Shown piece after piece: positions 40,871 to 64,000 of a DNA stretch of 64,000 bases. Every line of letters begins with the position of its first letter. Within the stretch, counting starts at the first letter, position 1. The DNA is from Callorhinchus milii (taxonomy: Eukaryota). Position numbers and translations under genes: made by a program. The notes under the pieces are model-generated. The model had not been told where the DNA came from and did not search any database. It saw only the letters and a program-made list of their open reading frames with translations. Location: positions 1,798,001 through 1,862,000 of the forward strand of contig NW_024704760.1 in the NCBI RefSeq assembly GCF_018977255.1. Reading direction: 5' to 3'.

Positions 40871-41748
40871 TTTACCCATGAGTTTGCACATGTCCATCCC
40901 GGCCGCTCCCAAAGTAACAAATCTTACGCTCCTCCCCATTGCTCACCATCTCTGAGTCAGTTTCTTCATCAAACGTCAAATGTCAGCCTTTTTACCCGTG
41001 AGCCCCATGTGCCTAACCCATCCTCAGTGTTGTGTAAAGACAGTTGCAACACCAACGTGCACTTATACGTGTGAAAGAAAGAGCCTCAAGGGAGCTTGAC
41101 AAAATAAGATGAATTAGTCATGAAGTGAATGTTGAGGAGGTAAAAGCCGGGACTAATTTTCCCCTGCAAATTCTTGTGCTTACATATAAACACCAATTGA
41201 TAAACACCAATGTTTATCTTTAATTTGATTTTAATACTGTTAGGGACTTAAAACGTTAGGTTACAAGTGCATAAGTATATAATATAAGTATATCATATTA
41301 TATTATATGATATAAGTATATTATATAAGTGTGCTGGAGCATCTCTGCACATCATTACCAAAAATATATTGACAGACACTATACGGTTTTGGTGATAATA
41401 TGCAGAGAAAACCAGGACTGTTGGGTAGGATTGTATATGTATGTGAACGTATGGATATTAATGTGTGCGCGCGTCTTAATATATGCACGCATGCGTTGGT
41501 GCGGAGCAAGGGAACAAACCTCATCTCAAACTTCCTCTTTGAGTGATTCAGGTCCAGTCAGTTGCAAATTAAATCAGGAAGTTCTTTCTTTCAGAGTTTT
41601 GAAGACGAAATGTGGTATACAACTCAACAGTAGAAAGAAATGGTGCTTCGGTGAGCTTGACTTGCTCTTTCTTTTAACGCTCAAGCTGCCTTTTCAGTAG
41701 GAAGCGATGAGAGCTGCCACACAGCAGACGTTGTTCTCTTCGCTCCTG

Positions 41749-41788
41749 ATGGACATCAGCTTGATTCTTCTCTTCACTTCTCTCGCAG
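41749..41788 (+). CDS. CD300/pIgR/MDIR-like receptor copy A, leader exon
   Basis: MDISLILLFTSLA with |gtgagt donor; in-frame upstream ATG at 41707. Confidence 0.8.
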
Positions 41789-42604
41789 GTGAGTGACACC
41801 CGGAGCTGAGCAGCCAGATGTTCCGAGTCTCATCAACCTCCAGGTTTACGTTGTGGCTCGTGTCTGTAAGTCTTTCTCCGCAATAACTTGTTACAAATGA
41901 ACCTTTGAAATGTTTGTTGTGATAAACTAGTTTATTACTAAATAGAAACAATTAAAAAATTTTGTCTAAGACTCAGCAGGAAAAATGCAACTTTACTGTA
42001 CACGTATCAAATGGACACGCACCTCTTCTGTAATAATAAACAATGAAAGTAAAACTATTTGATGTGGATCGATGGTACTATATTTTCAACAACACCCACT
42101 GGCCGATGTATTGGCTGAACTGAGCAGCAGTTTTAATGCAACCTTTGTTCTCAAAATACAAGTTATAAGTTACTTTGCAATCCTTGGTCTCAGTATTTGA
42201 CCAATTTGAGATCAGCTTTGGTTGTCACTGTTAGTGCCTCCTCCTCAACTAGATGCAGAACAACAACTTGCATTTATATAGCAACCGTCACACCAGCAGC
42301 ATCTCGGGAGTGCTTAAACTGCAATACAATAATAATAAGAATCCTTGCATTTGATATAGCACCTTATCATGTCTTCTAGACATCTCAAAGCGCTTCACAG
42401 AATATATTGTAAAGTGAATTGACTTTTAACAGCTGTGCCCAGCCTCAGTGATCAATGCTTAAACCCCAATCACAATACACAAGACATTTAACTGTATGGA
42501 TAAGAGCAGTGGTGCACACAGTCTGTACACATTTGGGAATCTTTTACTGAAGGATGCGCTTGTATTAAGCAGTTATAGTTCGATTTGTGACATTTTGTCT
42601 ATAG

Positions 42605-42931
42605 ATTCAGGTGGATTATGGGCAGAAGCTGAAGTAACAGGAGTTGTGGGACGAGCGATCACAATAGACTGTCGATATGGTAAGCAGACGTACTCGCGAC
42701 ACAGGAAATATTGGTGTCGGGGGCACTTTCGCTCCACTTGTAAAGTTGTAATTGATACAAGAGCCGACAATGGACAACGAGGAAATTTCTCAATCGTAGA
42801 TAACGCCAGAGACGGGGTATTTACTGTAACTATGAAGAATCTCAACACGAGAGATACAGGATGGTATTGGTGTGGTATTGATAAGCTTGCCAACGATCGA
42901 ATGTTTGCTGTAAAACTACACATATCTGACG
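42605..42931 (+). CDS. Receptor copy A, IgV exon
   Basis: CRY...KYWC-x7-C...DTGWYWCG, the CD300/pIgR-type V domain with an extra disulfide; phase 1/1. Confidence 0.92.
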
Positions 42932-43462
42932 GTAAGCTGTCTGAGCTATTGATTCTTATTTTAATGTGTAAAACTTGTATGTGAGAGTATTCAGGACAAT
43001 ATAATGTTTGTGTAAAGCTACTCATATCTGACCACACTTTAAACTATTTTCATTTGACTGATAAATTTTGCGAACAATGTATAAACTCAGCAAGTGTCCA
43101 GCTCCTCAGCACTTCTGTTAGTTGCACTCTCACTTCTGGGTCAGATGGTTACGGCTTCCAGCTCAATATTGGGGCTTTGAGCTCACTGTCTGGGCTAAAC
43201 CCCCAGGATGACACTGTGGGGAGTGCTGCAGTATCGAAATTGCAGTCCTTTGGATGAGAGGTTAAATCACAGTTGGATCTCCTTGTTCAGATGAATGTTA
43301 AAGATCCAATGACGCTATTTGAAAGCAGAAGAAGCTCTTTCTAATTTAAGACAAGTCAGATTACATGAAAAGTTATTTCTCTCTTCTATGGCCACCTGTA
43401 AAGAGTACCGTTGCAGAAATTGGAATCTGTCAGCCTGTGACTGATTGCTTCTTTCCCCACAG

Positions 43463-43783
43463 CGCCCGTGTCTATGCCTGTAATTAGATTTTTATCAGCA
43501 CCCACTGCCTCATGTTCGGAAGGTTATGTCTCCATCTCCTGTGAGACCATCAATGGATCCCTTCCCATTCAGTATGAATGGTACAGAGAGACAGAGAATG
43601 AAGCTTTAGAGATCTCTCACAGCAACAAACTAGACATACAATGCATCTCCACCGCCCAGTGTCACCAGTACTACTGCACAGCCTCAAATAGCAAAGGAAA
43701 ACAATCCAGTGAAAATGTTGAAGTCTCAGTCTTACAACCTGTACAGACAGCCTGCAGTTGCTCCGTACAAATCAACATTCCTG
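43463..43783 (+). CDS. Receptor copy A, Ig C2-like exon
   Basis: VSMPVI...ISCETINGSLPIQYEWY...YYCTASN; 321 bp; phase 1/1. Confidence 0.9.
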
Positions 43784-44554
43784 GTAAGTGCTCCTTTATA
43801 AAGACACTGGAATTGCCTAATATATCTACTGTATATTTATTTACCTATATGAGAACTGACTGAATTTAAAGCAGGGAGCCTCTCCTGGTGTCCTGGCCAC
43901 CAATCCCCAAATATGATTACACTTCATGGCTGCTTGTGAGACATTGCTGTGCACAAAATAGCAGGTGCGTTTCACCCATAAGCTACACAATCAACTGAGA
44001 AATTGTCTACACTGTACATTTTGCACTTGGATTTCACGCGCTGAGATTCCACTTGTTTGTTAACCAACAGTGTTAACCAAATTGCTGTGCGCAATTGGCT
44101 GCCGCCTTTGTCCACAAATATACAGTCAATTCACTTTACAGTGTGTTCTGTGAAGCGCTTTGGGACGTCTTCCAGACGTGAAAAGCGCTATATCAAATGC
44201 AAGGATTATTATTATTATTATTATTTAAATTTGCCACGTTTTATTTTGGTGATTATCCTGCCTAATGCACACCTTCCACAAACTTAAGAGTAATAATATT
44301 GAGCAGCAGCAGCGGGTCAGTGAGCCTGACCTCCAGTTTCACACACATTGTGGCTCAGCCCTGCTCTGTTTGTGAGCACAACATCCCAGACCTTAATCGT
44401 TGAGAGGATCATAGAGCTAAGGCCAATGAGCTAAAGTCAATTTCTAGCCAGACTTGTTCTGGTCTCAGATTTGGGGGGGTAATTTAATTGATTCTCGAGA
44501 GAAAATTCTGAAACTTTGAAATAACAAGATCAACCACAGATGACATTTACACAC

Positions 44555-44790
44555 CACCTTCACATCGGGAGTTCGTCCCAAGGCACTGGACAGTCAGAGA
44601 TTTGGAGCCAAGCAGGAGCCTGGGATCAGGAGGGGTGGAGGGTAGGGGTAGGAGGGTGACTGAAGGTGCGATGGAAGAGGAGATTCTTGAGACATGCCTT
44701 GACGGAGGCAAGGGAGGGAGTGAGGCAAAGGGATTGTGGTATGGAGTTCCAAAGGTTGGGGGCAGAGAGGCTGAAGGCCGGTGGTGGGAC
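44555..44790 (-). mobile_element. L2 LINE 3' fragment in the C2-stalk intron of copy A
   Basis: Homologous to 55110-55350 and 61476-61716; FKA.LK..LFDHAF-like end plus tail. Confidence 0.65.
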
Positions 44791-44967
44791 AGTAAATTAA
44801 CAGTATAAATGGCGAGTGCATTAGTACTAATGTCCCGTGCTGACCAATATGGTCACAATCACAGAGAAAGTGTTGTCTGTTTTTCAAGCCTGAGGTGCAG
44901 TTTGGTATCAAAGCTTTCTCCTGAGCAGCTATTGAGTAAATCTGAATTGTGTTCTTTCCCTTGAAAG

Positions 44968-45091
44968 GACATAAATATTCCTGTCCCGAGATCACAACCA
45001 AGCCAACATCAACTGCACATGTTCCAGCTGCAAGCATCTCCTCCACTGTCACACAAGCCACCTTCACGGCAACTGAAGGTGAACAGTACAG
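44968..45091 (+). CDS. Receptor copy A, Thr/Ser-rich stalk exon
   Basis: aag| and |gtagga; HKYSCPEITTKPTSTAH...TEGEQY; phase 1/2. Confidence 0.8.
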
Positions 45092-45713
45092 GTAGGAATG
45101 GAACTATCACCACATGTGTCTGGCCCTGGCATGTCAGCGAGTCTTGAAGGGGCAAACCGATCACTGAGAGCATGGATTCTTCTCACTCATCTACTTTTAA
45201 CCCTGTAAACTAATGAATAGCGTGGTCCTAAACCAACCATCTGATGGATAGGGTGATCCTAACTGGAGAAACAGTGGGAAAACTGCCTTTCAGTACTTTC
45301 AGTGGTAAATTATGCACTTTTAGCTGATTAAACTCCAATATTTACCACAAACCTCGTCTCTCGCCAACTGGCAGCTAATAATCTCTGGAATTGGATAAAC
45401 AGGGTGCGTCATTCCAGAGACAGAGAGAGAGAGAGAGAGTGCACATTCCATTACTCCCATAGGGACATTTCCATGTGTAGGTGGCATTCTCTCAGCCTGG
45501 TTTGGATACCCTTAAACACGGTGCTGGGTTTCCGCATGTGTCAGACACGTGGCTGCCCCCCCAAAAAACACAAAAGATTCTCACCAGCCATTCTGACATT
45601 AAGGTTTGAAAGTTGCAAAACGAGCCCTCCTCATTGTGTTATATTTCACAAACTTGGCAAAGAGTTGGGCGCTTCTCGAAAAGCGTTCCCACTTCCTGTT
45701 CTCTGCTCCGCAG

Positions 45714-45811
45714 GTTACTGTACATTGTGCTGGGAGTGCTGGGGCTGCTGCTGATTGCAGGCATTCTGTCTGTACTTTTGCTCAGGAAGCAAAAGCAAAA
45801 GAAAAAGCACG
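45714..45811 (+). CDS. Receptor copy A, transmembrane exon
   Basis: LLYIVLGVLGLLLIAGILSVLLL followed by RKQKQKKKH; no charged TM residue. Confidence 0.9.
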
Positions 45812-46068
45812 GTAGGTGTCTGGCTCATTAACATTTAATTATTTATATTGACATTTATATTAATTATGTCATTGTTGTCAAGTGGCTGCCCAAAACATAT
45901 ACAGTTAATTCACTTTACAGTATATTCTGTGAAGCGCTTTGAGACGTCTCGAAGACGTGATAAGGCGCTTTATCAAATGCAAGGATTATTATTATTATTA
46001 TTATTAGGAAGTGGATGATTCTTGCCAACATTTCTCCTCTGTTTAAGATCTCCGCCTTCCTGTTTCAG

Positions 46069-46112
46069 GTAAAAGAACGGTTGGCTCACGTGGAGCAGGG
46101 AATGGTGATGAG
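46069..46112 (+). CDS. Receptor copy A, short cytoplasmic exon
   Basis: ttcag| and |gtaaga; 44 bp; phase 1/0. Confidence 0.8.
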
Positions 46113-46423
46113 GTAAGACGTTTAATATACGCTTTATGACGCCAAGAAAAGTTAAAACTGATGTCCTGGGGTCTGTCTACAAGTGGATGTTAAAGAACCA
46201 CTATTCAAAAAGAGACAGGAGTTTCTCCCCATGTTTTGGCCAACAATCCGCCAGCTTAACTGGTCATTCACGTCCCGGCTGTTTGTGGGACATTGTGTGC
46301 GCAGATTGTGAAGCGAGCGATTTGAGACAGTGACATTATAGACGCGATTTCAATCGCAAAATTATTACTCAGTTCTATGCAAGCGTGACTGAGCATTGCA
46401 TTGACTGGTGAAATTAATTTCAG

Positions 46424-46705
46424 CTTGAAAGCAATATTACATACGCAACTGTGCAGAAGAGGCAAGCTCGTTCTGTGGCTGGGAGCAGCGAGGGAGCCAC
46501 ATTTACTGGAGATGCCGACATCAATTACGCAGAAGTGCAGTTAGTTCAGAGATCGGCAGAGAGTGGAACACCAGCCACGCTCTCACCTGACACTGGCAAC
46601 ACCACCATTTACAGCAATATCATGGTTCAAAATCCACCGTCGCAGGACAGAAAGGAAAATTGGAATCGGTTGGAATCAACAGAATATGCTACAGTTGCAC
46701 ATTAG
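46424..46705 (+). CDS. Receptor copy A, terminal cytoplasmic exon with ITIM/ITSM motifs
   Basis: ITYATV, INYAEV, TIYSNI, TEYATV, then TAG; AATAAA at 47128; whole CDS 1236 nt = 411 aa. Confidence 0.9.
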   Translation, partial: LESNITYATVQKRQARSVAGSSEGATFTGDADINYAEVQLVQRSAESGTPATLSPDTGNTTIYSNIMVQNPPSQDRKENWNRLESTEYATVAH

Positions 46706-47693
46706 CAGCAAGAATAGTGATGGGTATGTGTGTGTGGTGGGGGAGAGGGAATGCAACCCATGATGTGCTATTGATCACAAGTCGCAATTTTCGCTATATT
46801 GATGCATCGCGATGTGGGGCAGGAGTAGCTCACAATGCCTTTATTCCCATTAGCCGTTTTTGGCTCCAGTAAAATGCGCAGGGCTTTATGCGGCAATCCT
46901 TTTATGTTATTTTTGTCGGACGTTCAGAGATGCTGCACTATTTGTGTCCAAACTGTCCACAAAAAAAAACATCACCCTGATGGGATTTCCTCTGTCTGGC
47001 TGAGCAGGTAGACACATGCTGCGGGATTTCCTCTGGCTCCAATTAAACAACTCAGGGGATCCCATGTGTGTGACCGGCATTGCCTAATGTAACGCTGCGC
47101 TGAATGTTTACGCCTTTCGCTGAGTTGAATAAAAGTCTCAACTTCTTGACTTTCAGTGTTCATTTGCCTCAATAGTTGGGGAAGTGGAGCTGTGGGCGGA
47201 GCCACCACAACAAGCTGTCCCTGATATTAACACACACACCGTTCACATGGGAAATCTTAGTGTCACATGTACCGTTGTGCTAGTTCTGAGGATTTAGTTG
47301 ATACACATATGAGCAATGGATGACAAGAAAGAAAGTCAGTCACATACAGGTGCCTCCCTGCACCTAATACTTTCTGGGATTTCCACATGCAGGTGGGATA
47401 CATGATCTCTGTCTAGTTCGAATGCCGTGAAGCACGATGATGGATTTGTGCGTGTGTCAGACACCCGGCTGATTATGGTGATGGGTTTCCGCATGTGTCA
47501 GACATGGGTTGGACACCTGGCTGACACCTGAAAATAAATTGTAGCCGAATATAACCAGCTTGGTTTCATTTTCTGAAATATACAGGAAGAGATCATCTAG
47601 ATCACATGAATGCTCAATAGTCTACTGTGAGCTACTGCCAGTTCCTGAGCTTAACTCTGAAATTGATATCTGAAGACAAGGACAGAGCTAATC

Positions 47694-47817
47694 ATGTTCC
47701 TGCCATTTTCGGTGCCTCCAATTCTCATTCCGTTGGCCTCTGCAAACCAAGTTGATCTACTCTTCACCCCAAAGAAAACATTGGCCATTGTGATTCTTCT
47801 CTATTCTTCTCTCTCAG
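47694..47817 (+). CDS. Receptor copy B, leader-like exon
   Basis: Open frame from ATG ending LAIVILLYSSLS with |gtgagt; 3' end resembles the copy A leader; start codon uncertain. Confidence 0.55.
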
Positions 47818-48739
47818 GTGAGTGACAACCTGAACTGGGTTTTACCACTACTACAGAACCATAGAAACTTACAGCACAGAAGGTATCCATTTGGCTCATT
47901 GTATCTGTGCCGGTTCTTTCAAAGAGCAAACCTTTCAGTCCCAATTAGCTGCCTTTGCCCCCAACCCCCACCCCGTTCCCCATTCTCTGTAGTTTTTGCT
48001 GTGTGTGATTAGCTGCCACTGTTCACCAACAAAATGTTCAGTCAATTCATTTTACAGAATATTCCGTGAAGTGTTTTGAGATGTTTGCCAGGATTATTAT
48101 TATTATTACTCCGGCAGTTTAAACAATTACCGGAACGTCATTTTATTTCTGCTTTTAAAATTGAACTTTTCTTTTGCAGCAAAAATGTGATGTAAAGTGT
48201 TCAGGTTACATTTTCATAAACTTAAAAATGGGTAATAAAAATAGTAATGGTGAAATAATAGTAATAATATTGCTTTCTTTCATTAATAATACAGTAACAG
48301 TATGATAATGCTTTCTTTTTTACTGCAAAATGTGGTGTAGAGTTTTAAGGTTAGGTTTTCACAGACAATACTAACAGTATAAGAGACAATAAATTTTGGG
48401 TCTCGTTTAAAAGATCAATTAAAATACTATCTGTAGAAAAGAGGCTAATTGTAGAAAAAGAGAATTGAAAGTTTCTAAATTTGTTCCTGTGAAATAGGAA
48501 GTGAAACATTCTGTCACAAAAAACTCAAGGAAAATTAGAATTTGTGACAACTAGATTTTAAACTTCACAAAATAATGATTCTGTTTTTACAAAGGAAAAC
48601 GAGTTATAAGATCAATTCATCTTACTGCTTGGGAAACAGTTAACTGTGAATTATTTTGTCGATGACAAGGTTACACGACTCAACAATAACTTGCATTAAA
48701 AGGGAAGTGGCACCTTCCTGTCTCTGGTCTGCTCACGCC

Positions 48740-49010
48740 TCACTGCACTAACCCCCGCCTTCGCTTAGCTGGCTCTGGTCTTTTGCACGTCGCGGCCATG
48801 CTTTCAGTTACTATGCCCCGAATCTCTTGAACTCCCTGCATCAATCCTTCCATCTCTCCTCCTCTTTGCCCATCTTCACCTGAAGACTTTCCTCTTGGCC
48901 TTTGCCTTTGCCTGCTGTCAACCCCTGCCCCCACCCCCTCTCTTCGCAGCTGAGACGATACCCACCTGAAGGATGCTGTATATATGCAAGTTGTTGTTAC
49001 TGTTGTTGTT
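48740..49010 (+). mobile_element. L2 LINE 3' fragment with (GTT)n tail
   Basis: HLKTFLL-like end and gctgtatatatgcaagttgttgtt tail. Confidence 0.55.
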
Positions 49011-49894
49011 TGTTATATAGCACTTTTCACGTAGGATAGCGTCTCAGAGCACTGCAAACTAACAGGTACTAGATGTCAAACTATATCCAATGGAAACAGT
49101 CGTTACATAGAATTATTACGTTTGGCAAACAAAATACACAGTCACTCCACTTTACAATAACGTGATAAGACGCTATATCAAATGCAAGGATTATTATTAT
49201 TTTCATTGCAGTGAATATTGCATGGAAATGGGCCATTCAGCCCAACAAGCCTGTTTATATTCAAAATGAGCCGCAATCCTCCTTATCACCTCTCTCAGAT
49301 ATAGGTTTGTTACAGTGAAAAAGGAAGTGAAACATTTGTGTAAATGTTTGACTCTTCATCTCCAACGTACTCCTCCCTCTCTCTTTCTCTGGCCCTCATT
49401 GATAGCTTTTTGGTCATGTCCCCCCCCCCCCATTTTAATGTTTGGCTACCATTGCCTTGGCACCACTAACTCTCTGAGCCATTGTGAGGAAGAACCAGGG
49501 TCCTCAAATCAACAGCGTCCCGACCTGGCACCACTGAGCTGGAAATCACAGAGAAAATTAAATGTGGTGACTCAGTGTATTCAGGCATTTGTTCGGGAAC
49601 GGAGATTAAATCAAACACCAGTGGCTTTTTGTTTTTGTAACACAGCAACAACAACAACAACAACAACAAGATTACATTTGTATAGAGCCTTTCACGTCAG
49701 GAGGACGTCCCAAGGCGCTGGATAGAATTATTACGTTTGGCCAACAAAATACATAGTTACTCCACTTTACAATATATTCTGTGAAGCACCTTGAGATGTC
49801 TCAATGACATGATAAGGCGCTATATCAAATGCAAGGATTATTGTTAGAATAATAGTTACCAGTGAAACTGAAATGTGTTGCTTTGTCTTAATAG

Positions 49895-50225
49895 GAAACT
49901 GCTATCTTTACGAACAGCTTTCAACTCCATTATCCAGCCTCACACCAATCAATCCCCCCCAAAACAACTCCACAGCAACCAGTCTGCCAACATCCAGCCC
50001 CTCAACCATAAGCCCCGAAACCTCAAGCCCCCAAACTTCAAGCCCCCAAACCTCAAGCCCCCAAACCTCAAGCCCCCAAACTTCAAGCCCCCAAACCTCA
50101 AGCCCGCAAACCACAAGCCCCCCAATATCCAGCCCCACCACTGGACATCCCACAACTATAAGACAACAGACCATTGCTTACTCAACAAGGCCACAAGACA
50201 AAGAATCCAAATGTGAAAGCAGCAG
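49895..50225 (+). CDS. Receptor copy B, mucin-like stalk exon with TSSPQ repeats
   Basis: atag| and |gtatga; Ser/Thr/Pro-rich; phase 1/2 as in the copy A stalk. Confidence 0.8.
50018..50125 (+). repeat. 15-bp coding tandem repeat (ACCTCAAGCCCCCAA), about 7 units
   Basis: Directly visible; encodes TSSPQ-like units. Confidence 0.9.
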
Positions 50226-50593
50226 GTATGAAACTTACTTTCTTAGAATTGGGTAGGTCAAAGAACTCGTACCACAGATAAAATGTTCTTTAATAGCTGT
50301 GGGGGCGGGAGGAGGCAATGACAATTTCATCAGTCATTTGAAATAGAATGAATTGGACCGGAAATGTCAGCTGAGAGCTTCTGAGTAATGGTGGCGGTAC
50401 ATCAAAAGCAAGGATTGTAATCAGCACGTGTGAAAGCTTTTTATCGGGTTCTGCGTCTTGTTGCAGAGTTATAAATAGTATTTTTCTACAAACATTTCCT
50501 TCCAATCGTTCTAACCTTCTACAAATGGAGTAAAGAGTTGAGCCTTTTGACACAGTGTACTTACTGACTACTTCCTGTTTCTTTGCTCTGCAG

Positions 50594-50670
50594 TTCTCCA
50601 TACATTGCACTGGGAGTTCTGGGACCACTGCTAATGCTCTGTGTTCTGTCTGTTCTTTTGAAAAAGCATG
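50594..50670 (+). CDS. Receptor copy B, transmembrane exon
   Basis: SPYIALGVLGPLLMLCVLSVLLKKH; ctgcag| and |gtaggt; homologous to the copy A TM. Confidence 0.8.
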
Positions 50671-51166
50671 GTAGGTTTTTAAATCTCTCAACGTTTTGCC
50701 TGCGTTTTGCTCACGAAATACACAGTCAATTCACTTTAGAGTATATAGTGTGAAGCACTTTGAGACGTCTTGACGACGTGATAAGGCGCTATATCAAATG
50801 CAAGAATTATTATTATTATTATTAGTGTTTACTTACCAACAGAATATCTTTGCCCCTAAACTGGAGTTGTGATAGAGCTCAGACATTGGGCAGAGTGGGA
50901 GCAGGCCGGGAGGCTTCATATATTGTAAAAAGGAATGCATATACAGGATGTGGGGAAAAGACAGGGCTAAATGGATTGCTCTCCCATGGGTGATTATATG
51001 ATTGATACAAATCAAACATGTGCATTTTTTAATGTTGTGTCACTCCTCTATTCACACAACGTGTGATTAGAAAAAAAATGCTCTTTTCACCAATAACATT
51101 ATAACAACAAAAACAACTTGCGTTTATACAGCGCCCTTCACGTGGGGTAAACTTATTGTTTTTCAG

Positions 51167-53792: not shown

Positions 53793-53836
53793 CTCATCAC
53801 CATTCCCTGCTCCACGTGAGCCAACCGTTCTTTTAC
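53793..53836 (-). CDS. Receptor copy C, short cytoplasmic exon
   Basis: Identical to copy A 46069-46112. Confidence 0.8.
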
Positions 53837-54093
53837 CTGAAACAGGAAGGCGGAGATCTTAAACAGAGGAGAAATGTTGGCAAGAATCATCCACTTCCTA
53901 ATAATAATAATAATAATAATCCTTGCATTTGATAAAGCGCCTTATCACGTCTTCGAGACGTCTCAAAGCGCTTCACAGAATATACTGTAAAGTGAATTAA
54001 CTGTATATGTTTTGGGCAGCCACTTGACAACAATGACATAATTAATATAAATGTCAATATAAATAATTAAATGTTAATGAGCCAGACACCTAC

Positions 54094-54191
54094 CGTGCTT
54101 TTTCTTTTGCTTTTGCTTCCTGAGCAAAAGTACAGACAGAATGCCTGCAATCAGCAGCAGCCCCAGCACTCCCAGCACAATGTACAGTAAC
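54094..54191 (-). CDS. Receptor copy C, transmembrane exon
   Basis: Identical to copy A 45714-45811. Confidence 0.88.
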
Positions 54192-54818
54192 CTGCGGAGC
54201 AGAGAACAGGAAGTGGGAACGCTTTTCGAGAAGCGCCCAACTCTTTGCCAAGTTTGTGAAATATAACACAATGAGGAGGGCTCGTTTTGCAACTTTCAAA
54301 CCTTAATGTCAGAATGGCTGGTGAGAATCTTTTGTGTTTTTTGGGGGGGCAGCCACGTGTCTGACACATGCGGAAACCCAGCACCGTGTTTAAGGGTATC
54401 CAAACCAGGCTGAGAGAATGCCACCTACACATGGAAATGTCCCTGTGGGAGCAATGGAACGTGCACTCTCTCTGTCTGTCTCTGGTGTGACCCACCCTGT
54501 TTATCCAGTTCCAGAGATTATTAGCTGCCGGTTGGCGAGAGACGAGGTCTGTGGACCCCAATGGGATAAGTGTTGGAGTTTAATCAGCTAAAAGTGCATA
54601 ATTTACCATTGAAAGATTGAAAAGTAGTTTTCCCACTGTTTCTCCAGTTAGGATCACCCTATCCATCAGATGGTTGGTTTAGCACCACCATATTCATTAG
54701 TTTACAGGGTTAAAAGTAGAGGAATGAGACGAATCCATATTCTCAGTGATCGGTTTGCCCCTTCCAGACCCGCTGACATGTCGGGGTTTGACACATGAGG
54801 TGATAATTCCATTCCTAC

Positions 54819-54936
54819 CTGCCCAATCCACCTTCAGTTTTGGCTTCAGTTGTGATGGTGAAAGAGTTGCTTGCAGCTGGAACATGTGCAGTTGGCATTG
54901 ACTTGGTTGTGATCTCGGGACTGGAAAATTCAGTTC
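54819..54936 (-). CDS. Receptor copy C, stalk exon
   Basis: TEFSSPEITTKSMPTAHVPAASNSFTITTEAKTEGGLG; phase 1/2. Confidence 0.8.
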
Positions 54937-55109
54937 CTTTCAAGGGAAAGAACACAATTCAGATTTGCTCAACAACTGCTCAGGAGAAAGCTTTGATACC
55001 AAACTGCACGTCAGGCTTGAGTAAGAAACAACACTTTCTCTGTGATAGTCATGGTGCTGGTCAGCAGGGAGTGTCAGTACTGATGCACTCGCCATTGATT
55101 CTCTTAATT

Positions 55110-55350
55110 TATTGCCACACCATCTCCGGGCCTTCAGGCTCTCTGTCCCCACGGTTTGGAATTCCATCTGACAGTCCCTTCACCTCACTCCCTCCATTGT
55201 CTCTTTCAAGGCACGTCTCAAGACCCTCCTCTTCGATCACGCCTTCGGTCACCCTCCTACCCTCTTCCCTCCGTGCCCTCCACACTCCCTTATCCCAACC
55301 TTCAGCTCAACCTTCCCTGACTGTTCAGTGCCTTGGGACATCGTCCCTGT
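55110..55350 (+). mobile_element. L2 LINE 3' fragment (copy C intron; duplicate at 61476-61716)
   Basis: gccttcagg...tggaattcc...ttcaaggcacgtctcaagaccctcctcttcgatcacgccttc then cagtgccttgggacatc tail. Confidence 0.7.
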
Positions 55351-55635
55351 CATGGACTGGTTAGTGGTCACCCATTTAGCGCAGCGGACAAAATAGAGTG
55401 AGTTTCTGCAGTGCGGTCAATTGCTCAGTTGAGTCGCTATCTTCTGGGTAAAACCAGCAGCTATTTTGTGCACAGCAATGTCCCACAAGCAGCCGTGACA
55501 TTTAATTGTATTTGGGGATTGTTGGCCAGGACACCAGGAGAGGTTCCCTGCTTTAAATTCAGTCAGTTCTCATATAGGTAAATAAATATACAGTAGGTGT
55601 ATTGAGCAATTCCAGTGTCTTTATAAAGGACTTAC

Positions 55636-55956
55636 CAGGAATGTTGATTGGTACTGAGCAATTGCAGGCTTCCTGTATTAGCTGTAAGACCGACTCTTCA
55701 ACCATTTCACTGGATTCAGTTCCTTTGCTATTTGAGGCTGTGCAGTAGTATTGGGGACACTGGGCGGTGGAGATGCATTGTATGTCTAGTTTGTTGCTGT
55801 GAGAGATCTCTGAAGCTTCAGCCTCTGTCTCTCTGTACCATTTATACCGAATGGGAAGGGATCCACTGATGGACTCACAGGAGATGGAGACATGACCTCC
55901 TGAACATGAGTCAGTGAGTGCTGATACAAACCTAATTACAGGCACAGACACAGACT
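55636..55956 (-). CDS. Receptor copy C, Ig C2-like exon
   Basis: 321 bp, SVSVPVIRF...ISCESISGSLPIRYKWY...YYCTASN; ag/gt intact. Confidence 0.9.
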
Positions 55957-56254
55957 CTGTGGGGAAAGAAGCAATCAGTCACAGGCCGACAGATTCCAAT
56001 TTCTGCATCCGATCCCTTTACAGGTCATCGTAGAAGAGAGAAGTCACTTTCCCTCGGAATCGGACTCGACTTATGAGCTGAATATGCGCCGAGTTTACAC
56101 ATTGTGTTAGTGAAGTGCATCAGTCACATTAAAGGGAATGGTTTAACGTACAGTCAGATGTGTGTAGCTTTCTGCAAAGGTTGTATTATCCTGGCTGGAC
56201 TGACAGCTCACAGTTTTACACATTGAAATAAGAATCAACAGTCAGGTATCTTAC

Positions 56255-56572
56255 CGTCAGATATGTGTAACTTTACAGCAACCATTGTATCAAAGCCAGG
56301 CTTATCAATCCCACAGTTATACCATCCTGCATCTCTCATGGTGAGATTCTCCATAGTTACAGTAAATACCCCGTCTCTCTTATCTGTGATTGAGAATCTT
56401 CCTCGTTGTCCGTTGACGGCTTTTGTATCAATTACATCTTCACAACTGGAGCGATAATACCCGTGACACCAATATTTCCTGTGTCCCGAGTACGTCTTTT
56501 TATCATATCGACAGTTTATTCTGATCGCTCGTCCCACAACTCCTGTTACTTTAGCTTCTGCCCATAATAGGT
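56255..56572 (-). CDS. Receptor copy C, IgV exon
   Basis: 318 bp, CRY...KYWC-x7-C...DAGWYNCG. Confidence 0.92.
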
Positions 56573-57620
56573 CTGAAACCAGAGACAAAACGTCACGAAT
56601 CAAACGAACCACAACCGCTCAACAGAAACACATCCTTCGGTAAAAGATTCCCACTGTGTACAGACTGGTGCACCACTGCTCTTATCCATACACTGTGATT
56701 GGGCTTTAAGCATCGATCACTGAGGCTGGCGCTGATGTTATTGCTGTTTGTACTGTATCAGGTCTGGGAAAGAGGAACTGACCACCACACCCGAGGCTGA
56801 TCTCTGGCGCCCCATCAAATTCTCTTTTCTTTTTCATCGTTTTCTGTTATTTAGTTTTCCCCCAAAAATATACACATTCAACCGACTTTACAGTGTATCC
56901 GGTGGAGCGCTTTGAGGCAGACGTCCCGATGACGTGATCAGGCGCGACACCGAACGCAAGGATTATTATAATCGTCGTTGGGAAAAATCTGTGAATTTCC
57001 CCCAAGGAGTTGAACAAATTCACACCATAAATACAGCGACCGTGGGTTACAGGCGTTAATTTGCTCTTTAGACAGTTTTGCAGAAATGAACAACAAATTT
57101 TTACATTTCTTCCTGTGTTACACAGGAACAGGAGGAGACCATTCAGTCCATCCGAGCCTGTTTCGCCCTTCTATTAGATTGTGGCTGATCTGTACCTCAT
57201 CTCCAAGAAAAAGGGCTTGATTTTACAATGATTTTTTTGTTGTTCTTATTGTATTTGGGACCGATCTCAAACTGGTCAAATCCTGAGAATGTTCAGTGAT
57301 AGTAACAGCGCTCAGACCAAGGTTTGCAAAGCAACGTCTAACTTGTATTTTGTCGAAAAGACTTGAAACGTTCACAAGATGCACACCTCAGGCCGGAGAT
57401 CAGAGTGTGTCCGTGAGTAACGGGAAGTCATGAAACTACCAGTTTTTTTCTTTACCGAAATCTCAATACTGTTCAGCAATTGTTGGAAAATTTTGAGAGA
57501 GAAAGAGAGGGAGAGAGAGGGAGAGGGAGAGAAAAGGAAACATTTTTAACAACAGCTTTCAAACTGGCAACCAGTTCAACCATCAGAACATCTGGCTGCT
57601 CAGCTCCGGGTGTCACTCAC

Positions 57621-57660
57621 CTGCGAGAGAAGTGAAGAGAAGAATCAAGCTGATGTCCAT
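57621..57660 (-). CDS. Receptor copy C, leader exon
   Basis: Identical to the copy A leader MDISLILLFTSLA; in-frame upstream ATG at 57702. Confidence 0.82.
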
Positions 57661-57828
57661 CAGGAGCGAAGAGACCAACGTCTGTTGTGTGGCAGCTCTC
57701 ATCGCTTCCTACTGAAAAGGCAGCTTGTGTGTTAAAGGGAAGAGGAAGTCAAGCTCACGAAAGTGCCGTTTCTTTCTATCTTTGGGTTTTAAAAAATGCA
57801 GAAAGAAAGAACAAACTTCCTTAAATTA

Positions 57829-58157
57829 GTGGAGTCCTGTAGCTCAGTGGTTAGAGCACTCGCTTTGCAAGTGAGAGACCTGAGTTCAATCCCCGGCAGG
57901 TGAGGGCCAAACCTCAGGCAAGTTTCCTTACTCCACACAGAGCCTAATAATAATCCCTCCAAAACCAAAAACAATAATAAATTGGTCATTTTCAATCCAC
58001 GACTGTTTGTGGGACATTGCTGTGCGCAATTGGCTGCCGCGTTCGCCCACAAATATACAGTCAATTCAGATTATAGTGTGTTCTGTGAAGCGCTTTGGGA
58101 AGTCCTCCCGACGTGAAAAGCGCTATATCAAATGCAAGGATTATTAGTATTATTATT
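57829..58157 (+). mobile_element. tRNA-derived SINE (family B), full length
   Basis: gtggagtcctgtagctcagtggttagagcactcgctttgcaagtgag head, B box, body and tail. Confidence 0.85.
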
Positions 58158-60486
58158 AACAATTTGCAATGACCTGATGAAGATCACTCAACGACCAAGG
58201 GTCACCCAAAGTTTGATCCCCTCCCCTGCCACCAACACACGTGTGCACACACTAAGACAAGCACACATATTAATATACATACATAAACATATACATATAC
58301 TTACATAAACAAAGATAATAATAAGAATCCTTGCATTTATATACAGTCCCACCCATTTCTGTCAAACTCAATTATGTTGAAATCCCACATATATTGACAA
58401 CACAGGGAAGTTCTGGTTTCTTCTCTGCGTATCATTATGAAAAACATAGTGTCTGTCGACATGCAAATAAATTGCGTCACACTTACAGCCACAAACTCTT
58501 TGAGTCCCTGACAGTTTTCAAGACTTTTTTTTTAATCATGTTAACAGGCCCTTTTCCTCATGTGTGACATGTGAGTGAGTGTGACACATGTTAGGCTTCT
58601 AAATAAGATGTGTTGCATGTGCTGATCATAGTCTATAGTCTATTGTCAGGGTCTATACAATACTGAGGTTGGGTTAGGCACAGGAATAACATAGTGATAA
58701 GACGCTATACCAAATGCAAAGATTAGTATTATTATTATAAGCTCATGGGTAAAATAATAATAATCCTTGCATTTGATACAGAGCCTTATCACATCCTTGA
58801 GACGTCTCAAAGCGCTTCACAGGATACACTGTAAAGTGAATTGACTGTATGTTTTGTGGGCGAAACGCGGCAGCCAATTGCACACGGCAGCGTCCCACAG
58901 GCAGTCGTGGATTGAGTGAGCAAATGATTATTATTTAGAAGGGATTGTTACCCCTGGAAAAGTGATCCGCCAATCGATTAAAAGGCTGATAATTAACATT
59001 TGATGAAGAAACTGACTCAGAGATGGGAATAGGGTAAGATATGTTACTTTGGGAGCAGCCGGATGGACATGTGCAAATACACAGCCATTGATTCAGGTGT
59101 CGTTGTATCTTTTTATTATATGGAATTCATAGAAAAGACATTCAAGGTTTTCATGAACGATTCAGTAGAACAAACATTAATTTTTGTTTAAGAATAATAT
59201 CAACATTGAGGAATATCGAAGCGGCGGCTGTGTCTGTTTGGCACAGTTAGTAACATCCTGGAGGGAGCTGCGTTTCCAGAAGTGTCGTCGTCCTTCAGAT
59301 AAGGACATTAAGCCGAGGTCTCATCTACTTGTTCAGCTGAACGTCAAAGGCTCTGTGATCTTTCCATTAAGAGAAGACAGTTTCTCTCCGTGTCCTGGTC
59401 AACGATTCTCCAGCTATTTACCAGCCGATGCCTGTGTGTGGGACCTTGATGTGCATGTAATGACTGCTGCGTTGCACACCTCAAAGTAAAGTGCTTTGAG
59501 ACGTTTTGATAATGAGCCATAATGAGCTATAAACATTGCAAATCCACGTGATCCGGATTTCTCACCGACCAGGTCGGATGCCCAGTGAGGATCTTATGGT
59601 GTTGCTCGGGTTCAGCTGAAAAAACAAATAATTAATCCAGAGATTTTATTGATGTGACTGTGTATCAAAAGGGCATTTTACTTATCAGTTTACGAGTGTG
59701 TTTTATTTTACTGATATTTCTGAATTTCTCAGAAAAAGTACCAACCTCCTCCACAGGGTGTAACTGAGCAAAACCACAGAACAAAACAGTCAGTCTTAAA
59801 AGAGACAGTATCCGCGTGTGCCAAACACCATCATTTTCCTCCGTTCTGACTGTAACCTTAATGCAAGAACGATCAGATATTGGGCTTTGGCTGCGGATTA
59901 GACTTTTGCTGTTGACGTTTTAGAGAAAAGTCTAAATGCAAATTAGAGATCCGAAACTCAACATAACCGGGGTTTATGGACCAGCAATCGTCTAATCTGG
60001 AGGTCCTACTGTTGGGCTCAGGGATGTCTTCTGTAGGATATTGCTTGAAGGCGTGAGTGATAATCAGGAGAGAGACAATCAGAAGAAGACAGGATGTATA
60101 AAAGGACACTGAGAGTGCGACACACATGTGGGTTGGAGTTTTGTGAGTTGAGAATAAAGTGTGAAGCTTTTGAAAAGTGATGTGTTTGAGGAAAGAGGAT
60201 TGAGGCGCTCACTTTCTCCTGACGATTTTTAAGAGAATAATGGAGGAACCGTTGGGAAATATCCAGGGTGACATTTGTGTTCTGTGTGTTGGGCCCCGAG
60301 CCAATCGCCCCGACACGGTTCTCAGTCAAGGTTACAACAACAACAAGTTATATTTGTAAAGCGCTTCTCACGTTGGGAGGATGTCCCAAGGCACTGGAGA
60401 GTCAATGATTTTTAACAACACACACACAAGATGGAGGGTCAGAAATTGTGACTGTGATGTGATAATCATCACTCGTCCATTCCTAC

Positions 60487-60560
60487 CTGTGTTGTTGACC
60501 TTTAGTTGCCATGATGGTGGCTTGTGTGACAGTGAACAGTAACCAATGTACATTAACGTA
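60487..60560 (-). other. Chimeric TM-less exon-like segment replacing the TM exon of copy D
   Basis: Uses the TM-exon pyrimidine tract with ctcag|; remainder resembles the 3' half of a stalk exon plus its gtagga donor. Confidence 0.5.
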
Positions 60561-61184
60561 CTGAGCAGAGAACAGGAAGTGGGAACGCTTTTCGAGAAGC
60601 GCCCAACTCTTTGCCAAGTTTGTGAAATATAACACAATGAGGAGGGCTCGTTTTGCAACTTTCAAACCTTAATGTCAGAATGGCTGGTGAGAATCTTTTG
60701 TGTTTTTTGGGGGGGCAGCCACGTGTCTGACACATGCGGAAACCCAGCACCGTGTTTAAGGGTATCCAAACCAGGCTGAGAGAATGCCACCTACACATGG
60801 AAATGTCCCTGTGGGAGCAATGGAACGTGCACTCTCTCTGTCTGTCTCTGGTGTGACCCACCCTGTTTATCCAGTTCCAGAGATTATTAGCTGCCGGTTG
60901 GCGAGAGACGAGGTCTGTGGACCCCAATGGGATAAGTGTTGGAGTTTAATCAGCTAAAAGTGCATAATTTACCATTGAAAGATTGAAAAGTAGTTTTCCC
61001 ACTGTTTCTCCAGTTAGGATCACCCTATCCATCAGATGGTTGGTTTAGCACCACCATATTCATTAGTTTACAGGGTTAAAAGTAGAGGAATGAGACGAAT
61101 CCATATTCTCAGTGATCGGTTTGCCCCTTCCAGACCCGCTGACATGTCGGGGTTTGACACATGAGGTGATAATTCCATTCCTAC

Positions 61185-61302
61185 CTGCCCAATCCACCTT
61201 CAGTTTTGGCTTCAGTTGTGATGGTGAAAGAGTTGCTTGCAGCTGGAACATGTGCAGTTGGCATTGACTTGGTTTTGATCTTGGGACTGGAAAATTCAGA
61301 TC
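61185..61302 (-). CDS. Receptor copy D, stalk exon
   Basis: 118 bp, paralog of copy C at offset 6366. Confidence 0.7.
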
Positions 61303-62001
61303 CTTTCAAGGGAAAGAACACAATTCAGATTTGCTCAACAACTGCTCAGGAGAAAGCTTTGATACCAAACTGCACGTCAGGCTTGAGTAAGAAACAACAC
61401 TTTCTCTGTGATAGTCATGGTGCTGGTCAGCAGGGAGTGTCAGTACTGATGCACTCGCCATTGATTCTCTTAATTTATTGCCACACCATCTCTGGGCCTT
61501 CAGGCTCTCTGTCCCCACGGTTTGGAATTCCACCTGACAGTCCCTTCGCCTCACTCCCTCCCTTGAGTCTTTCAAGGCACGTCTCAAGACCCTCCTCTTC
61601 GATCACGCCTTCGGTCACCCTCCTACCCTCTTCCCTCCGTGCCCTCCACACTCCCTTATCCCAACCTTCAGCTCAACCTTCCCTGACTGTTCAGTGCCTT
61701 GGGACATCCTCCCTGTCATGGACTGGTTAGTGGTCACCCATTTAGTGCAGCGGACAAAATAGAGTGAGTTTCTTCAGTGCGGACAATTGCTCAGTTGATT
61801 CGCTATCTTCTGGGTAAAACCAGCAGCTATTTTGTGCACAGCAATGTCCCACAAGCAGCCGTGACATTTAATTGTATTTGGGGATTGTTGGCCAGGACAC
61901 CAGGAGAGGTTCCCTGCTTTAAATTCAGTCAGTTCTCATATAGGCAAATAAATATACAGTAGGTGTATTGAGCAATTCCAGTGTCTTTATAAAGGACTTT
62001 C

Positions 62002-62322
62002 CATGAATGTTGATTGGTACTGAGCAATTGCAGGCTTCCTGTATTAGCTGTAAGACCGACTCTTCAACCATTTCACTGGATTCAGTTCCTTTGCTATTTG
62101 AGGCTGTGCAGTAGTATTGGGGACACTGGGCGGTGGAGATGCATTGTATGTCTAGTTTGTTGCTGTGAGAGATCTCTGAAGCTTCAGCCTCTGTCTCTCT
62201 GTACCATTTATACCGAATGGGAAGGGATCCACTGATGGACTCACAGGAGATGGAGACATGACCTCCTGAACATGAGTCAGTGAGTGCTGATACAAACCTA
62301 ATTACAGGCACAGACACAGACT
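62002..62322 (-). CDS. Receptor copy D, Ig C2-like exon with mutated donor (GT>GA)
   Basis: Identical to copy C except the last full codon (P>H); donor reads gaaagt instead of gtaagt. Confidence 0.75.
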
Positions 62323-62620
62323 CTGTGGGGAAAGAAGCAATCAGTCACAGGCCGACAGATTCCAATTTCTGCATCCGATCCCTTTACAGGTCATCGTAGA
62401 AGAGAGAAGTCACTTTTCCTCGGAATCGGACTCGACTTATGAGCTGAATATGCGCCGAGTTTACACATTGTGTTAGTGAAGTGCATCAGTCACATTAAAG
62501 GGAATGGTTTAACGTACAGTCAGATGTGTGTAGCTTTCTGCAAAGGTTGTATTATCCTGGCTGGACTGACAGCTCACAGTTTTACACATTGAAATAAGAA
62601 TCAACAGTCAGGTATCTTAC

Positions 62621-62938
62621 CGTCAGATATGTGTACCTTTACAGCAACCATTGTATCTCTGCCAAACTGATCAATCCCACAGTTATACCATCCTGCATCT
62701 CTCATGGTGAGATTCTCCATAGTTACAGTAAATACCCCGTCTCTCTTATCTGTGATTGAGAATCTTCCTCGTTGTCCGTTGACGGCTTTTGTATCAATTA
62801 CATCTTCACAACTGGAGCGATAATACCCGCGACACCAATATTTTGTGTGTCCCGAGTACTTCTGTTCATCATATCGACAGTTTATTCTGATCGCTCGTCC
62901 CACAACTCCTGTTACTTCAGCTTCTGCCCATAATAGGT
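62621..62938 (-). CDS. Receptor copy D, IgV exon
   Basis: 318 bp, open, 10 aa different from copy C. Confidence 0.9.
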
Positions 62939-63990
62939 CTGAAACCAGAGACAAAACGTCACGAATCAAACGAACCATAACCGCTCAACACAAACACATC
63001 CTTCGGTAAAAGATTCCCACTGTGTACAGACTGGTGCACCACTGCTCTTATCCATACACTGTGATTGGGGTTTAAGCATCGATCACTGAGGCTGGCGCTG
63101 ATGTTATTGCTGTTTGTACTGTATCAGGTCTGGGAAAGAGGAACTGACCACCACACCCGAGGCTGATCTCTGGCGCCCCATCAAATTCTCTTTTCTTTTT
63201 CATCGTTTTCTGTTATTTAGTTTTCCCCCAAAAATATACACATTCAACCGACTTTACAGTGTATCCGGTGGAGCGCTTTGAGGCAGACGTCCCGATGACG
63301 TGATCAGGCGCTATACCGAACGCAAGGATTATTATAATCGTCGTTGGGAAAAATCTGTGAATTTCCCCCAAGGAGTTGAACAAATTCACACCATAAATAC
63401 AGCGACCGTGGGTTACAGGCGTTAATTTGCTCTTTAGACAGTTTTGCAGAAATGAACAACAAATTTTTACATTTCTTCCTGTGTTACACAGGAACAGGAG
63501 GAGACCATTCAGTCCATCCGAGCCTGTTTCGCCCTTCTATTAGATCGTGGCTGATCTGTACCTCATCTCCAAAAAAAGGGTTGATTTTACAATGACGATT
63601 TTTTGTTGTTCTCATTGTATTTGGGACCGATCTCAAACTGGTCAAATCCTGAGAATGTTCAGTGATAGTAACAGCGCTCAGACCAAGGTTTGCAAAGCAA
63701 CGTCTAACTTGTATTTTGTCAAAAAGACTTGAAACGTTCACAAGATGCACACCTCAGGCCGGAGATCAGAGTGTGTCCGTGAGTAACGGGAAGTCATGAA
63801 ACTACCAGTTTTTTTCTTTACCGAAATCTCAATACTGTTCAGCAATTGTTGGAAAATTTTGAGAGAGAAAGAGAGGGAGAGATAGAGAGAGATAGGGAGA
63901 GAAAAGGAAACATTTTTAACAACAGCTTTCAAACTGGCAACCAGTTCAACCATCAGAACATCTGGCTGCTCAGCTCCGGGTGTCACTCAC

Positions 63991-64000
63991 CTGCGAGAGA
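63991..64000 (-). CDS. Receptor copy D, 3' end of leader exon (cut by window edge)
   Basis: tctctcgcag|gtgagt identical to the copy A and C leader ends. Confidence 0.75.

Follow-up and report, generated by a model that had tools for sequence, protein, structure and literature searches.

We analysed a stretch of 64,000 nucleotides of the Callorhinchus milii genome (hereafter, the window; RefSeq assembly GCF_018977255.1, contig NW_024704760.1, positions 1,798,001 to 1,862,000 of the forward strand), in which four related receptor units, A to D, lie within 41707-64000, on the 5′ side of the GNAI3 gene and directly upstream of it. The basic gene encodes a leader, a variable-type immunoglobulin (Ig) domain of the CD300/pIgR type (V), an FcRL-like C2 domain, a stalk, an uncharged transmembrane (TM) segment and a tail with immunoreceptor tyrosine-based inhibitory and switch motifs (ITIM and ITSM, respectively). 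The region is probably the start of a multigene cluster of Ig-superfamily receptors of the modular domain immune-type receptor (MDIR) kind, and its units would have originated by a birth-and-death process. The exons of A to D resembled one another far above chance (tblastn E values of 1e-10 to 1e-74). The window contained no N runs, and a C. milii contig of assembly GCA_018977255.1 (MU249850.1) was identical (100%) to window 42074-64000. When the genes were rebuilt exon by exon, the four units were found where an earlier note on this DNA had placed them, with A complete, B devoid of Ig exons, C shifted in its tail and D without a TM segment. The NCBI annotation already covers A (XP_007897670.2), B (XP_007897673.1) and a merged D+C (XP_042198175.1) under uninformative names, and Gnomon models exist for A (three isoforms), B, D+C and a further unit, E. 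The locus was followed for 10 kb past the window end (window-equivalent 64001-74072), where at least two further units (E and F) were present, as expected from the earlier suggestion that the cluster continued past the edge. No paper describing the C. milii cluster was found in a limited literature search.

Unit A was resolved into seven exons with AG/GT boundaries:

41707-46705, + strand: unit A, a complete receptor gene (LOC103182453, XP_007897670.2) with canonical splice sites and an intact open reading frame (ORF)
41707-41788, + strand: A, leader exon
42611-42931, + strand: A, V exon (alternative acceptor at 42605)
43463-43783, + strand: A, C2 exon
44968-45091, + strand: A, stalk exon
45714-45811, + strand: A, TM exon
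46069-46112, + strand: A, first tail exon (tail1)
46424-46705, + strand: A, second tail exon (tail2)

The exons of A end in phases 1, 1, 1, 2, 1 and 0 and encode an intact product of 423 aa, or of 425 aa when the upstream V acceptor at 42605 is used. XP_007897670.2 (“uncharacterized protein LOC103182453 isoform X1”) is identical to the 425-aa form (100% match). The stalk is short and O-glycosylatable, and the tail carries the ITIMs ITYATV and INYAEV and the ITSMs TIYSNI and TEYATV. Two NCBI isoforms of LOC103182453, X2 (385 aa) and X3 (341 aa), take as their donor a sequence inside the V exon, TATG/GTAAGC (42660-42675), and are predicted to lose part or all of the V domain. The best-supported assignment of A, judging from its domains and motifs, would be that of an inhibitory leukocyte receptor.

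Unit B, located downstream of A in the same orientation, comprises five exons:

47694-51634, + strand: unit B, Ig-less, with an intact 293-aa ORF, AG/GT sites and phases as in A
47694-47817, + strand: B, leader-like exon
49895-50225, + strand: B, stalk exon
50594-50670, + strand: B, TM exon
51167-51219, + strand: B, tail1 exon
51338-51634, + strand: B, tail2 exon

The B model was equal, base for base, to NCBI XP_007897673.1 (“cell wall protein RTB1-like”, formerly “mucin-17-like”). Its TM segment and tail were homologous to those of A (blastn 2e-9 and 2e-14; tblastn 3e-10), and the tail contains the motifs VTYDDV, ITYAEV and TTYATI. The original ATG position has been lost, and an in-frame ATG further upstream is used. 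The stalk exon (331 nt) is Ser/Thr/Pro-rich and mucin-like, with a 15-bp repeat present in 7.5 copies at 50010-50122. A search for V or C2 exons in the 2.1-kb first intron (tblastn E<10, blastn word size 7) returned no trace of them, and Pfam gave no match on B. The final eight codons and the stop (...ENNDNPCI, 51609-51634) are supplied by an inverted copy of a repeat resembling a short interspersed element (SINE), and the C-terminus of B thus appears to have been reshaped by repeat insertion. The Ig exons of B were either lost or never present, and its stalk is enlarged by the 15-bp repeat. Judging from the gene model, B would encode an ITIM protein with a mucin-like ectodomain and no Ig domain.

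Unit C lies on the opposite strand and again has seven exons:

52074-57702, - strand: unit C, with all splice sites intact
57702-57621, - strand: C, leader exon
56572-56255, - strand: C, V exon
55956-55636, - strand: C, C2 exon
54936-54819, - strand: C, stalk exon
54191-54094, - strand: C, TM exon
53836-53793, - strand: C, tail1 exon
53481-53143, - strand: C, tail2 exon

The matching phases of A and B and the recurrence of the same exons in C bear out the shared, phase-compatible exon set proposed earlier. In tail2 of C, a 1-bp deletion at 53304/53305 (opposite A 46602) causes the frame to be lost after DTGNT; both ITSMs are removed, and ITYATV and INYAEV remain. If the frameshift is real, C would be a weaker signaller. 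In the NCBI model XP_042198175.1, of which C makes up the 3′ half, splicing proceeds instead from a GC donor inside tail2 (53309) to a terminal exon at 52159-52074. The tail2 stretch AACACCACC (46597-46605 in A; 53300-53308 in C) exists in three versions, namely NTT in A at present, NNT in A of the older assembly and one base shorter in C. At the deletion site of C, A accordingly reads DTGNNTIY in the older assembly and DTGNTTIY in the present one, and the stretch is prone either to mutation or to sequencing error. Since the shifted tail of C depends on a single base at a site that differs between the A assemblies, it may itself be an error or the product of a hotspot.

Unit D reaches the window end and is a truncated tandem copy of the 5′ half of C:

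59527-64000, - strand: unit D, with V, C2 and stalk exons present
63991, - strand: D, end of the leader exon (ATG at 64072, beyond the window)
62938-62621, - strand: D, V exon
62322-62002, - strand: D, C2 exon
61302-61185, - strand: D, stalk exon
60557-60544, - strand: D, TM remnant with its acceptor lost; the exon stops after 14 nt
60534-60476, - strand: D, 59-bp stalk-exon fragment forming the duplication junction
about 59631-59527, - strand: D, possible terminal exon, equivalent to that of the Gnomon model for E

D lacks a TM segment because the junction of a recent 6.4-kb tandem duplication cuts its TM exon. Its C2 donor is GA, not GT, a lesion unmentioned in the earlier note. E and F occupy positions 1-10000 of the extended locus L001 (window-equivalent 64073-74072). 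E is oriented like C and D (- strand); its leader lacks the first ATG, its V is nearly identical to that of D, its C2 carries the same GA donor, and its stalk is intact and ends in ...VTQATIMATKGQQHR. The Gnomon model of E is a V-set protein of 220 aa with a non-TM terminal exon. F is placed head-to-head with E (+ orientation) and has a distinct V (CHYQKQWYRNNKKYWCWG) and C2 and no NCBI annotation; a search of its leader-like exon (..VPILTLLLCSASG) gave no in-frame ATG. The NCBI D+C model XP_042198175.1 (669 aa) reads through the broken donor of D and then splices into the leader exon of C; its signal peptide falls in the middle of the protein, and its C-terminus derives from the GC donor of tail2 and the exon at 52159-52074. 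In our view the joining of D to C reflects faulty prediction or read-through transcription, and the model does not represent a four-domain receptor. In all likelihood, D and E are 5′ duplicates without function. The soluble forms envisaged in the earlier note were not borne out as designed products, as D and E, with their dead C2 donor, look like truncated by-products.

The family relationship of the units was established from sequence, predicted structure and phylogeny. Pfam assigned to A a V-set domain together with Ig_3, Ig_2, I-set and Ig_C17orf99. Among solved structures (phmmer), V matched pIgR D1, D4 and D5 best, followed by CD300LF (E 1e-20), CD300A/C, NKp44 and TREM2, and its KYWC-x7-C motif aligned with pIgR D1 and CD300LF. 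The AlphaFold model of the A V domain (AF2, 20 homologues) had a predicted local distance difference test (pLDDT) score of about 90. In Foldseek this predicted model was closest to mouse CD300lf (TM-score 0.89, root-mean-square deviation 2.1 Å, 39% identity), with human CD300F, CD300A and then pIgR as the next fold matches. The best relatives of C2 were FCRL5 domains (best single domain 8e-8), followed by CD22 d6-d7 and FCRL4. The TM segments of A, B and C contain zero charged residues, and the tails, as read from the gene models, conform to (I/V/L/S)xYxx(L/V/I) next to an uncharged TM, in agreement with the inhibitory-type tails expected from the outset. Y367 was invariant and Y395 nearly so in the 20 one-module homologues compared, which came from sharks, rays and chimaera. 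The TM-tail region of A also gave a sub-threshold Pfam match to SIT (E 4e-4).

Homologues were present throughout Chondrichthyes, most of them named “polymeric immunoglobulin receptor-like”, “Fc receptor-like protein 5” or “CMRF35-like molecule”, and a little-skate homologue used as query led to Rostroraja eglanteria MDIR2, MDIR3 and MDIR5. Profile hidden Markov models (HMMs) built from the window V and C2 exons matched every domain of these three proteins (1e-24 to 1e-34), which are laid out as V-C2 (MDIR2), V-C2-V-C2 (MDIR5) and V-V-C2-V-C2 (MDIR3). A and MDIR2 shared 37% identity over 363 aa (E 1e-63), in an alignment that spans the signal peptide, V, C2, stalk and TM up to the I-x-YA-x-VQ motif. 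In the maximum-likelihood tree of V domains, whose outgroups were only the sequences returned by our searches, the five C. milii copies (A, C, D, E and F) formed one clade (support 92/94). This clade was sister to, and not nested inside, an elasmobranch clade (96/91) containing all MDIR domains. The joint clade (95/90) left out turtle CD300-like (CLM) sequences, teleost and Amia pIgR, a chondrichthyan single-V “CLM1/TMIGD3-like” group and a second C. milii gene (P0057). The V-domain phylogeny, an analysis recommended in the earlier note, thus set the C. milii V domains beside the MDIR clade and apart from the sampled CD300-like and pIgR sequences, and together with the phmmer, Foldseek and MDIR HMM matches it upheld the assignment to the CD300/pIgR/MDIR group. 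On the same evidence, A is the holocephalan counterpart of skate MDIR2. P0088 and its relatives in other chondrichthyans form a separate single-V, ITIM-tailed group named “TMIGD3-like” or “CMRF35-like molecule 1”. Human TMIGD3 is located at 1p13.2, not far from GNAI3, and an old linkage of CD300-type V genes to the GNAI3 chromosomal region is possible.

Self-BLAST of locus L001 and a MAFFT alignment of A with the reverse complement of C revealed the following features of the duplication history:

54178-60536, - strand: second unit of the tandem duplication of about 6.4 kb
45461-47246, + strand: near-identical inverted tract, A arm
52661-54444, - strand: near-identical inverted tract, C arm

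In L001 coordinates, the tandem units extend over 6731-13529 and 13537-19895. The first lies at window-equivalent 60544-67342, extending past the window end, and is 98.8-98.9% identical to the second. Both begin midway in a stalk exon, continue across a spacer and then a leader, V, C2, a stalk and intron 4, and stop 14 nt into a TM exon; the second therefore consists of a stalk 3′ fragment and a spacer, followed by C, leader included, as far as the beginning of its TM exon. This second unit opens with the 59-bp stalk fragment at 60534-60476, which is of E type. Within the window, C and D are 98.4% identical. Over its 5′ half, E is 97.0% identical to D and 95.7% to C, and these values identify it as an older partial copy. 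The three-way alignment of C, D and E is a mosaic in which D goes with C in the flanks and with E in the centre; the GA donor and each of the 14 positions at which the V exons of C and D differ fall in the centre. Such a mosaic suggests that the copies have undergone conversion or unequal exchange with one another. Since D and E have all 14 V differences in common, we rejected the idea that D diverged de novo from C once the duplication had occurred.

Within the inverted tract of 1.8 kb lie the last part of intron 4, the three exons that follow it (TM, tail1 and tail2) and roughly 540 bp of the 3′ flank. Its arms differ by one 1-bp indel and two substitutions and are 100% identical over 1.46 kb, and the flanking identity is 75-93%. 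Elsewhere A and C, which are mutually inverted, are 84% (V), 89% (C2) and 80% (stalk) identical. The tract has the signature of recent gene conversion. The earlier description of the cluster as diversifying by exon-level shuffling was not sustained, given that the D duplication breaks inside the stalk and TM exons rather than at exon borders and the A/C mosaic is a conversion-like tract.

The V exons have also changed faster than the introns. Between C and D, 14 of 318 nt differ in the V exon and 38 of 2672 nt (1.4%) in the introns (Fisher p 7e-4), with 1 difference in the 321 nt of the C2 exon. The V differences fall into two patches (the C/C′ region and the loop resembling complementarity-determining region 3), and nearly all are nonsynonymous. 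Pairwise ratios of nonsynonymous to synonymous substitution rates (dN/dS) for V were 1.2-1.6 in the older pairs and about 3 (to 3.1) for C versus D/E; those for C2 were 0.85-1.5. Binomial tests of nonsynonymous against synonymous changes in V were not significant (p 0.16-0.37). The V-exon excess may reflect diversifying selection, relaxed constraint or patchy conversion from unseen paralogues.

What the DNA itself displays is the anatomy of the units, their family relationship and the history of duplication and conversion; signalling, ligand binding and any use of B, C, D or E are inferred. The V domain of A may bind a ligand, either a lipid (by analogy with CD300) or an immunoglobulin (by analogy with pIgR/FcRL). 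Src-family kinases would phosphorylate the ITIM/ITSM tyrosines, and recruitment of SHP-1/SHP-2/SHIP to the tail would dampen leukocyte activation, as suggested by the motifs alone. At the level of the locus, serial tandem duplication of the 5′ half would have given the series E, D, C, and breakpoints within the stalk and TM exons would have left E and D without a TM segment or tail. A common GT-to-GA mutation would have killed the C2 splice donor in D and E, and the TM and tail exons of A and C, an inverted pair, may have been made alike by gene conversion or a very recent exchange. The V exons would meanwhile change faster than the introns, with dN/dS at or above 1. The variety of the units is, as far as the genome sequence can tell, a matter of ordinary multigene-family processes and not of a dedicated exon-shuffling system.

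Several points weigh against this account of an MDIR-type family with birth-and-death origin. ITIM function is read from motifs alone. The dN/dS values above 1 do not differ statistically from 1, so diversifying selection is not demonstrated. Older models (P0019, P0032 and P0050) pair V and stalk types otherwise, which may reflect misassembly or structural polymorphism. B, with a clean ORF, the right phases and a Gnomon model in two releases, fits a used gene better than decay, and both the 220-aa V-set model of E and the joining of D to C by Gnomon leave room for read-through or soluble products.

One alternative, which we consider unlikely, is that the locus is an actively used system that recombines phase-compatible exons on purpose to give inhibitory receptors from A and C, an Ig-less form from B and soluble forms from D and E. 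Its V and C2 exons are of phase 1-1 and leader-to-stalk splicing would remain in frame; this arrangement of Ig exons is, however, universal in the superfamily and thus uninformative for the locus. In favour of use, B has canonical splice sites and an intact 293-aa ORF that two annotation releases include; in a word-based search with its TM and tail, on the other hand, only B itself was returned and no orthologue was detected elsewhere, although such a search is insensitive for regions this short. The modelled 220-aa V-set protein of E has a non-TM terminal exon and D possesses an equivalent exon, isoforms X2 and X3 of A are predicted by Gnomon to omit part or all of V, and soluble relatives, the SITR, are known in carp (PMC3031540). 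Against these stand the breakpoints inside exons, the destroyed C2 donor shared by D and E and the lost TM acceptor of D.

That the receptors are the Fc/poly-Ig receptors of cartilaginous fish, with V and C2 binding IgM/IgW, seems improbable from the sequence. The top matches of V are pIgR domains and those of C2 are FCRL5 domains, and the idea meets a stated gap, as pIgR, FcRL and the classical FcRs have been reported lacking in cartilaginous fish (PMC4016189, PMC13337447), and the more recent paper asks how these animals manage the corresponding tasks (PMC13337447). However, the tail carries ITIM/ITSM motifs rather than a transcytosis signal, and bony-fish pIgR falls outside the V clade. The modelled V fold, moreover, is closest to CD300lf/CD300A, which bind lipids. 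A bolder reading, in which the MDIR-type receptors, with both domain types in one chain, would be the missing Fc/poly-Ig receptors and might also resemble the modular ancestor of the separate pIgR/FCAMR and FcRL lineages of bony vertebrates, appears to us equally speculative and of low probability; in a second variant, the E-D-C array would supply alternative ectodomains to one shared TM/tail.

A variable-cassette locus, in which the leader-V-C2-stalk cassettes of E, D and C would each have their own promoter and be cis-spliced to the TM/tail set of C, in the manner of the clustered protocadherins or UGT1A, is very improbable. Three tandem cassettes do lie in the same orientation upstream of one TM/tail set, D and E retain intact stalk donors in phase 2, the phase of the TM acceptor, the leader and about 90 bp upstream of it are conserved, and Gnomon joins D to C. 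Nevertheless, the strong V, C2 and stalk acceptors in between would intercept splicing, in most cases with loss of frame, and D and E have dead C2 donors. The Gnomon join, via a retained intron and an internal signal peptide, looks artefactual, and an array only 1-4% diverged indicates recent duplication instead of a maintained design.

An assembly artefact, with D, E or the A/C tract representing haplotigs or collapsed or misjoined repeats, is scarcely credible: the high identities (C/D 98.4-98.8%; the A/C tract 100% over 1.46 kb), the different V and stalk pairings of the older models (a C-type V is followed by an E-type stalk in XP_007897801.1, and V exons of the A and F types occur together in other old models) and the C indel at a site differing between the A assemblies would suit it, but N runs are absent, D and C differ structurally (E-type junction fragment, lost acceptor and GA donor), unique spacers separate the copies, XP_007897801.1, from an older independent assembly, already has a D/E-type V followed by a C-type V, and the 1.8-kb tract is shorter than typical long reads, with diverged flanks on both sides. 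A birth-and-death MDIR-type family accordingly remains the explanation that we favour.

With regard to the gene neighbourhood, a GNAT-type transducin alpha gene is encoded on the + strand (window 17116-19587, end at 19587) and GNAI3 on the - strand (25207-39207; last exon 25207-25398, ...NNLKECGLY; exon 1 near 39100), so that the two genes are arranged tail to tail. Human GNAT2-GNAI3 at 1p13.3 has the same arrangement. On the receptor-cluster side, human GNAI3 is flanked by GPR61 according to the earlier note; the human CD300 cluster lies at 17q25 and does not adjoin GNAI3. Synteny with GNAI3 was sought in one catshark and one skate, where the 10-kb flanks of the homologues held only more MDIR-like genes. 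A (TCC)19 run (39257-39311) and long poly-purine/pyrimidine stretches immediately precede exon 1 of GNAI3. A 650-bp purine-rich minisatellite (40057-40707) with units of 24/32/48 bp (GAGGGAGGGAAGGAT...) separates the promoter region of this gene from unit A, and GC skew reaches +0.42 across 40-42 kb.

Repeats were also noted within the cluster. A tRNA-Ala-like sequence (57834-57903, + strand, Rfam 47 bits), about 130 bp upstream of the C leader, adjoins a repeat (57965-58151) that ends ...GCGCTATATCAAATGCAAGGATTATTATT and recurs many times in introns and spacers; related copies include 40710-40885, 51609-51835 and 58739-58974, among others. The tRNA-Ala-like sequence is most likely the head of a tRNA-derived SINE and not a tRNA gene. 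A second, weaker tRNA-like match is present at 1034-1101, and the spacer between B and C contains a 39-bp tandem repeat (52360-52458, 2.5 copies, 90% match). Open frames of 169-185 aa on the strand opposite to the receptor genes (44597-45103, - strand; 54807-55361, + strand; 61173-61727, + strand) are conserved among A, C and D over the intron 3/stalk region. A Pfam search of the other long ORFs in the region, including these antisense frames, gave no match; their conservation probably reflects repeat-derived sequence.

The analysis provides a base-level anatomy of an MDIR-type cluster in a holocephalan, comprising exon structure, phases, orientation, junctions and a conversion tract, beside GNAT2-GNAI3. 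Holocephalans are the deepest-branching living lineage of cartilaginous fish. A V-C2 inhibitory gene of MDIR2 type is common to chimaeras, sharks and rays; such a gene was probably present in the chondrichthyan common ancestor and then expanded separately in the lineages. The findings bear on the literature claim that cartilaginous fish lack pIgR/FcRL-related genes, as both kinds of domain are present and joined in one receptor. The units of the cluster are concrete candidates for Ig binding or lipid sensing in these animals. No new mechanism of diversification is revealed.

Among known systems, the CD300/CMRF35-like proteins of mammals and reptiles share with the C. milii units a V domain with the KYWC-x7-C second disulfide and the CD300 fold, and CD300A and CD300F likewise have ITIM-bearing tails. 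CD300 proteins, however, possess a single Ig domain, whereas the C. milii units add an FcRL-like C2, and the turtle CD300-like V domains fall outside the C. milii/MDIR clade, which places the units outside a CD300 clade. Although pIgR D1, D4 and D5 are the top-scoring PDB sequences for the C. milii V, pIgR and teleost PIGRL differ in their overall design: pIgR has two to five V-type domains and no FcRL-type C2, in contrast to one V and a C2 here, and its tail directs transcytosis and has no ITIM motifs, while that of the C. milii units carries ITIM/ITSM. FCRL1-6 and CD22 also have ITIM tails and resemble the C. milii C2, with a similarity of only about 30% per domain; FCRLs lack a CD300/pIgR-type V, and the membrane-distal domain of the C. 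milii units is precisely such a V. B resembles SIT and other transmembrane adaptor proteins in having a short or unstructured glycosylated ectodomain, one TM segment and ITIM/ITSM-like tail tyrosines; the likeness is limited by the SIT match (in A) being below the Pfam cut-off and by the derivation of B from an MDIR-type gene.

The closest comparison is with the MDIRs. These receptors reportedly carry one to six Ig domains and include activating forms with a charged TM residue (Cannon et al. 2006), and no charged-TM activating form was present in the C. milii stretch examined, to 10 kb past the window. This stretch holds one-module V-C2 genes and an Ig-less unit only, unlike the multi-module MDIR3 and MDIR5; the sole four-domain C. 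milii protein, XP_042198175.1, is a read-through model via an internal leader. The Ig-less unit B had no counterpart among the homologues found. The C. milii genes form a sister clade with its own expansion and are not orthologues of particular MDIRs. MDIRs have been described in skate (PMC3031540). Those of the clearnose skate, Rostroraja (Raja) eglanteria, combine the same kinds of V and C2 domain and form a multigene family, as does the C. milii cluster, and MDIR2 repeats the plan of A from V, C2, stalk and TM to the tail with tyrosine motifs, at nearly the same length (416 versus 423 aa).

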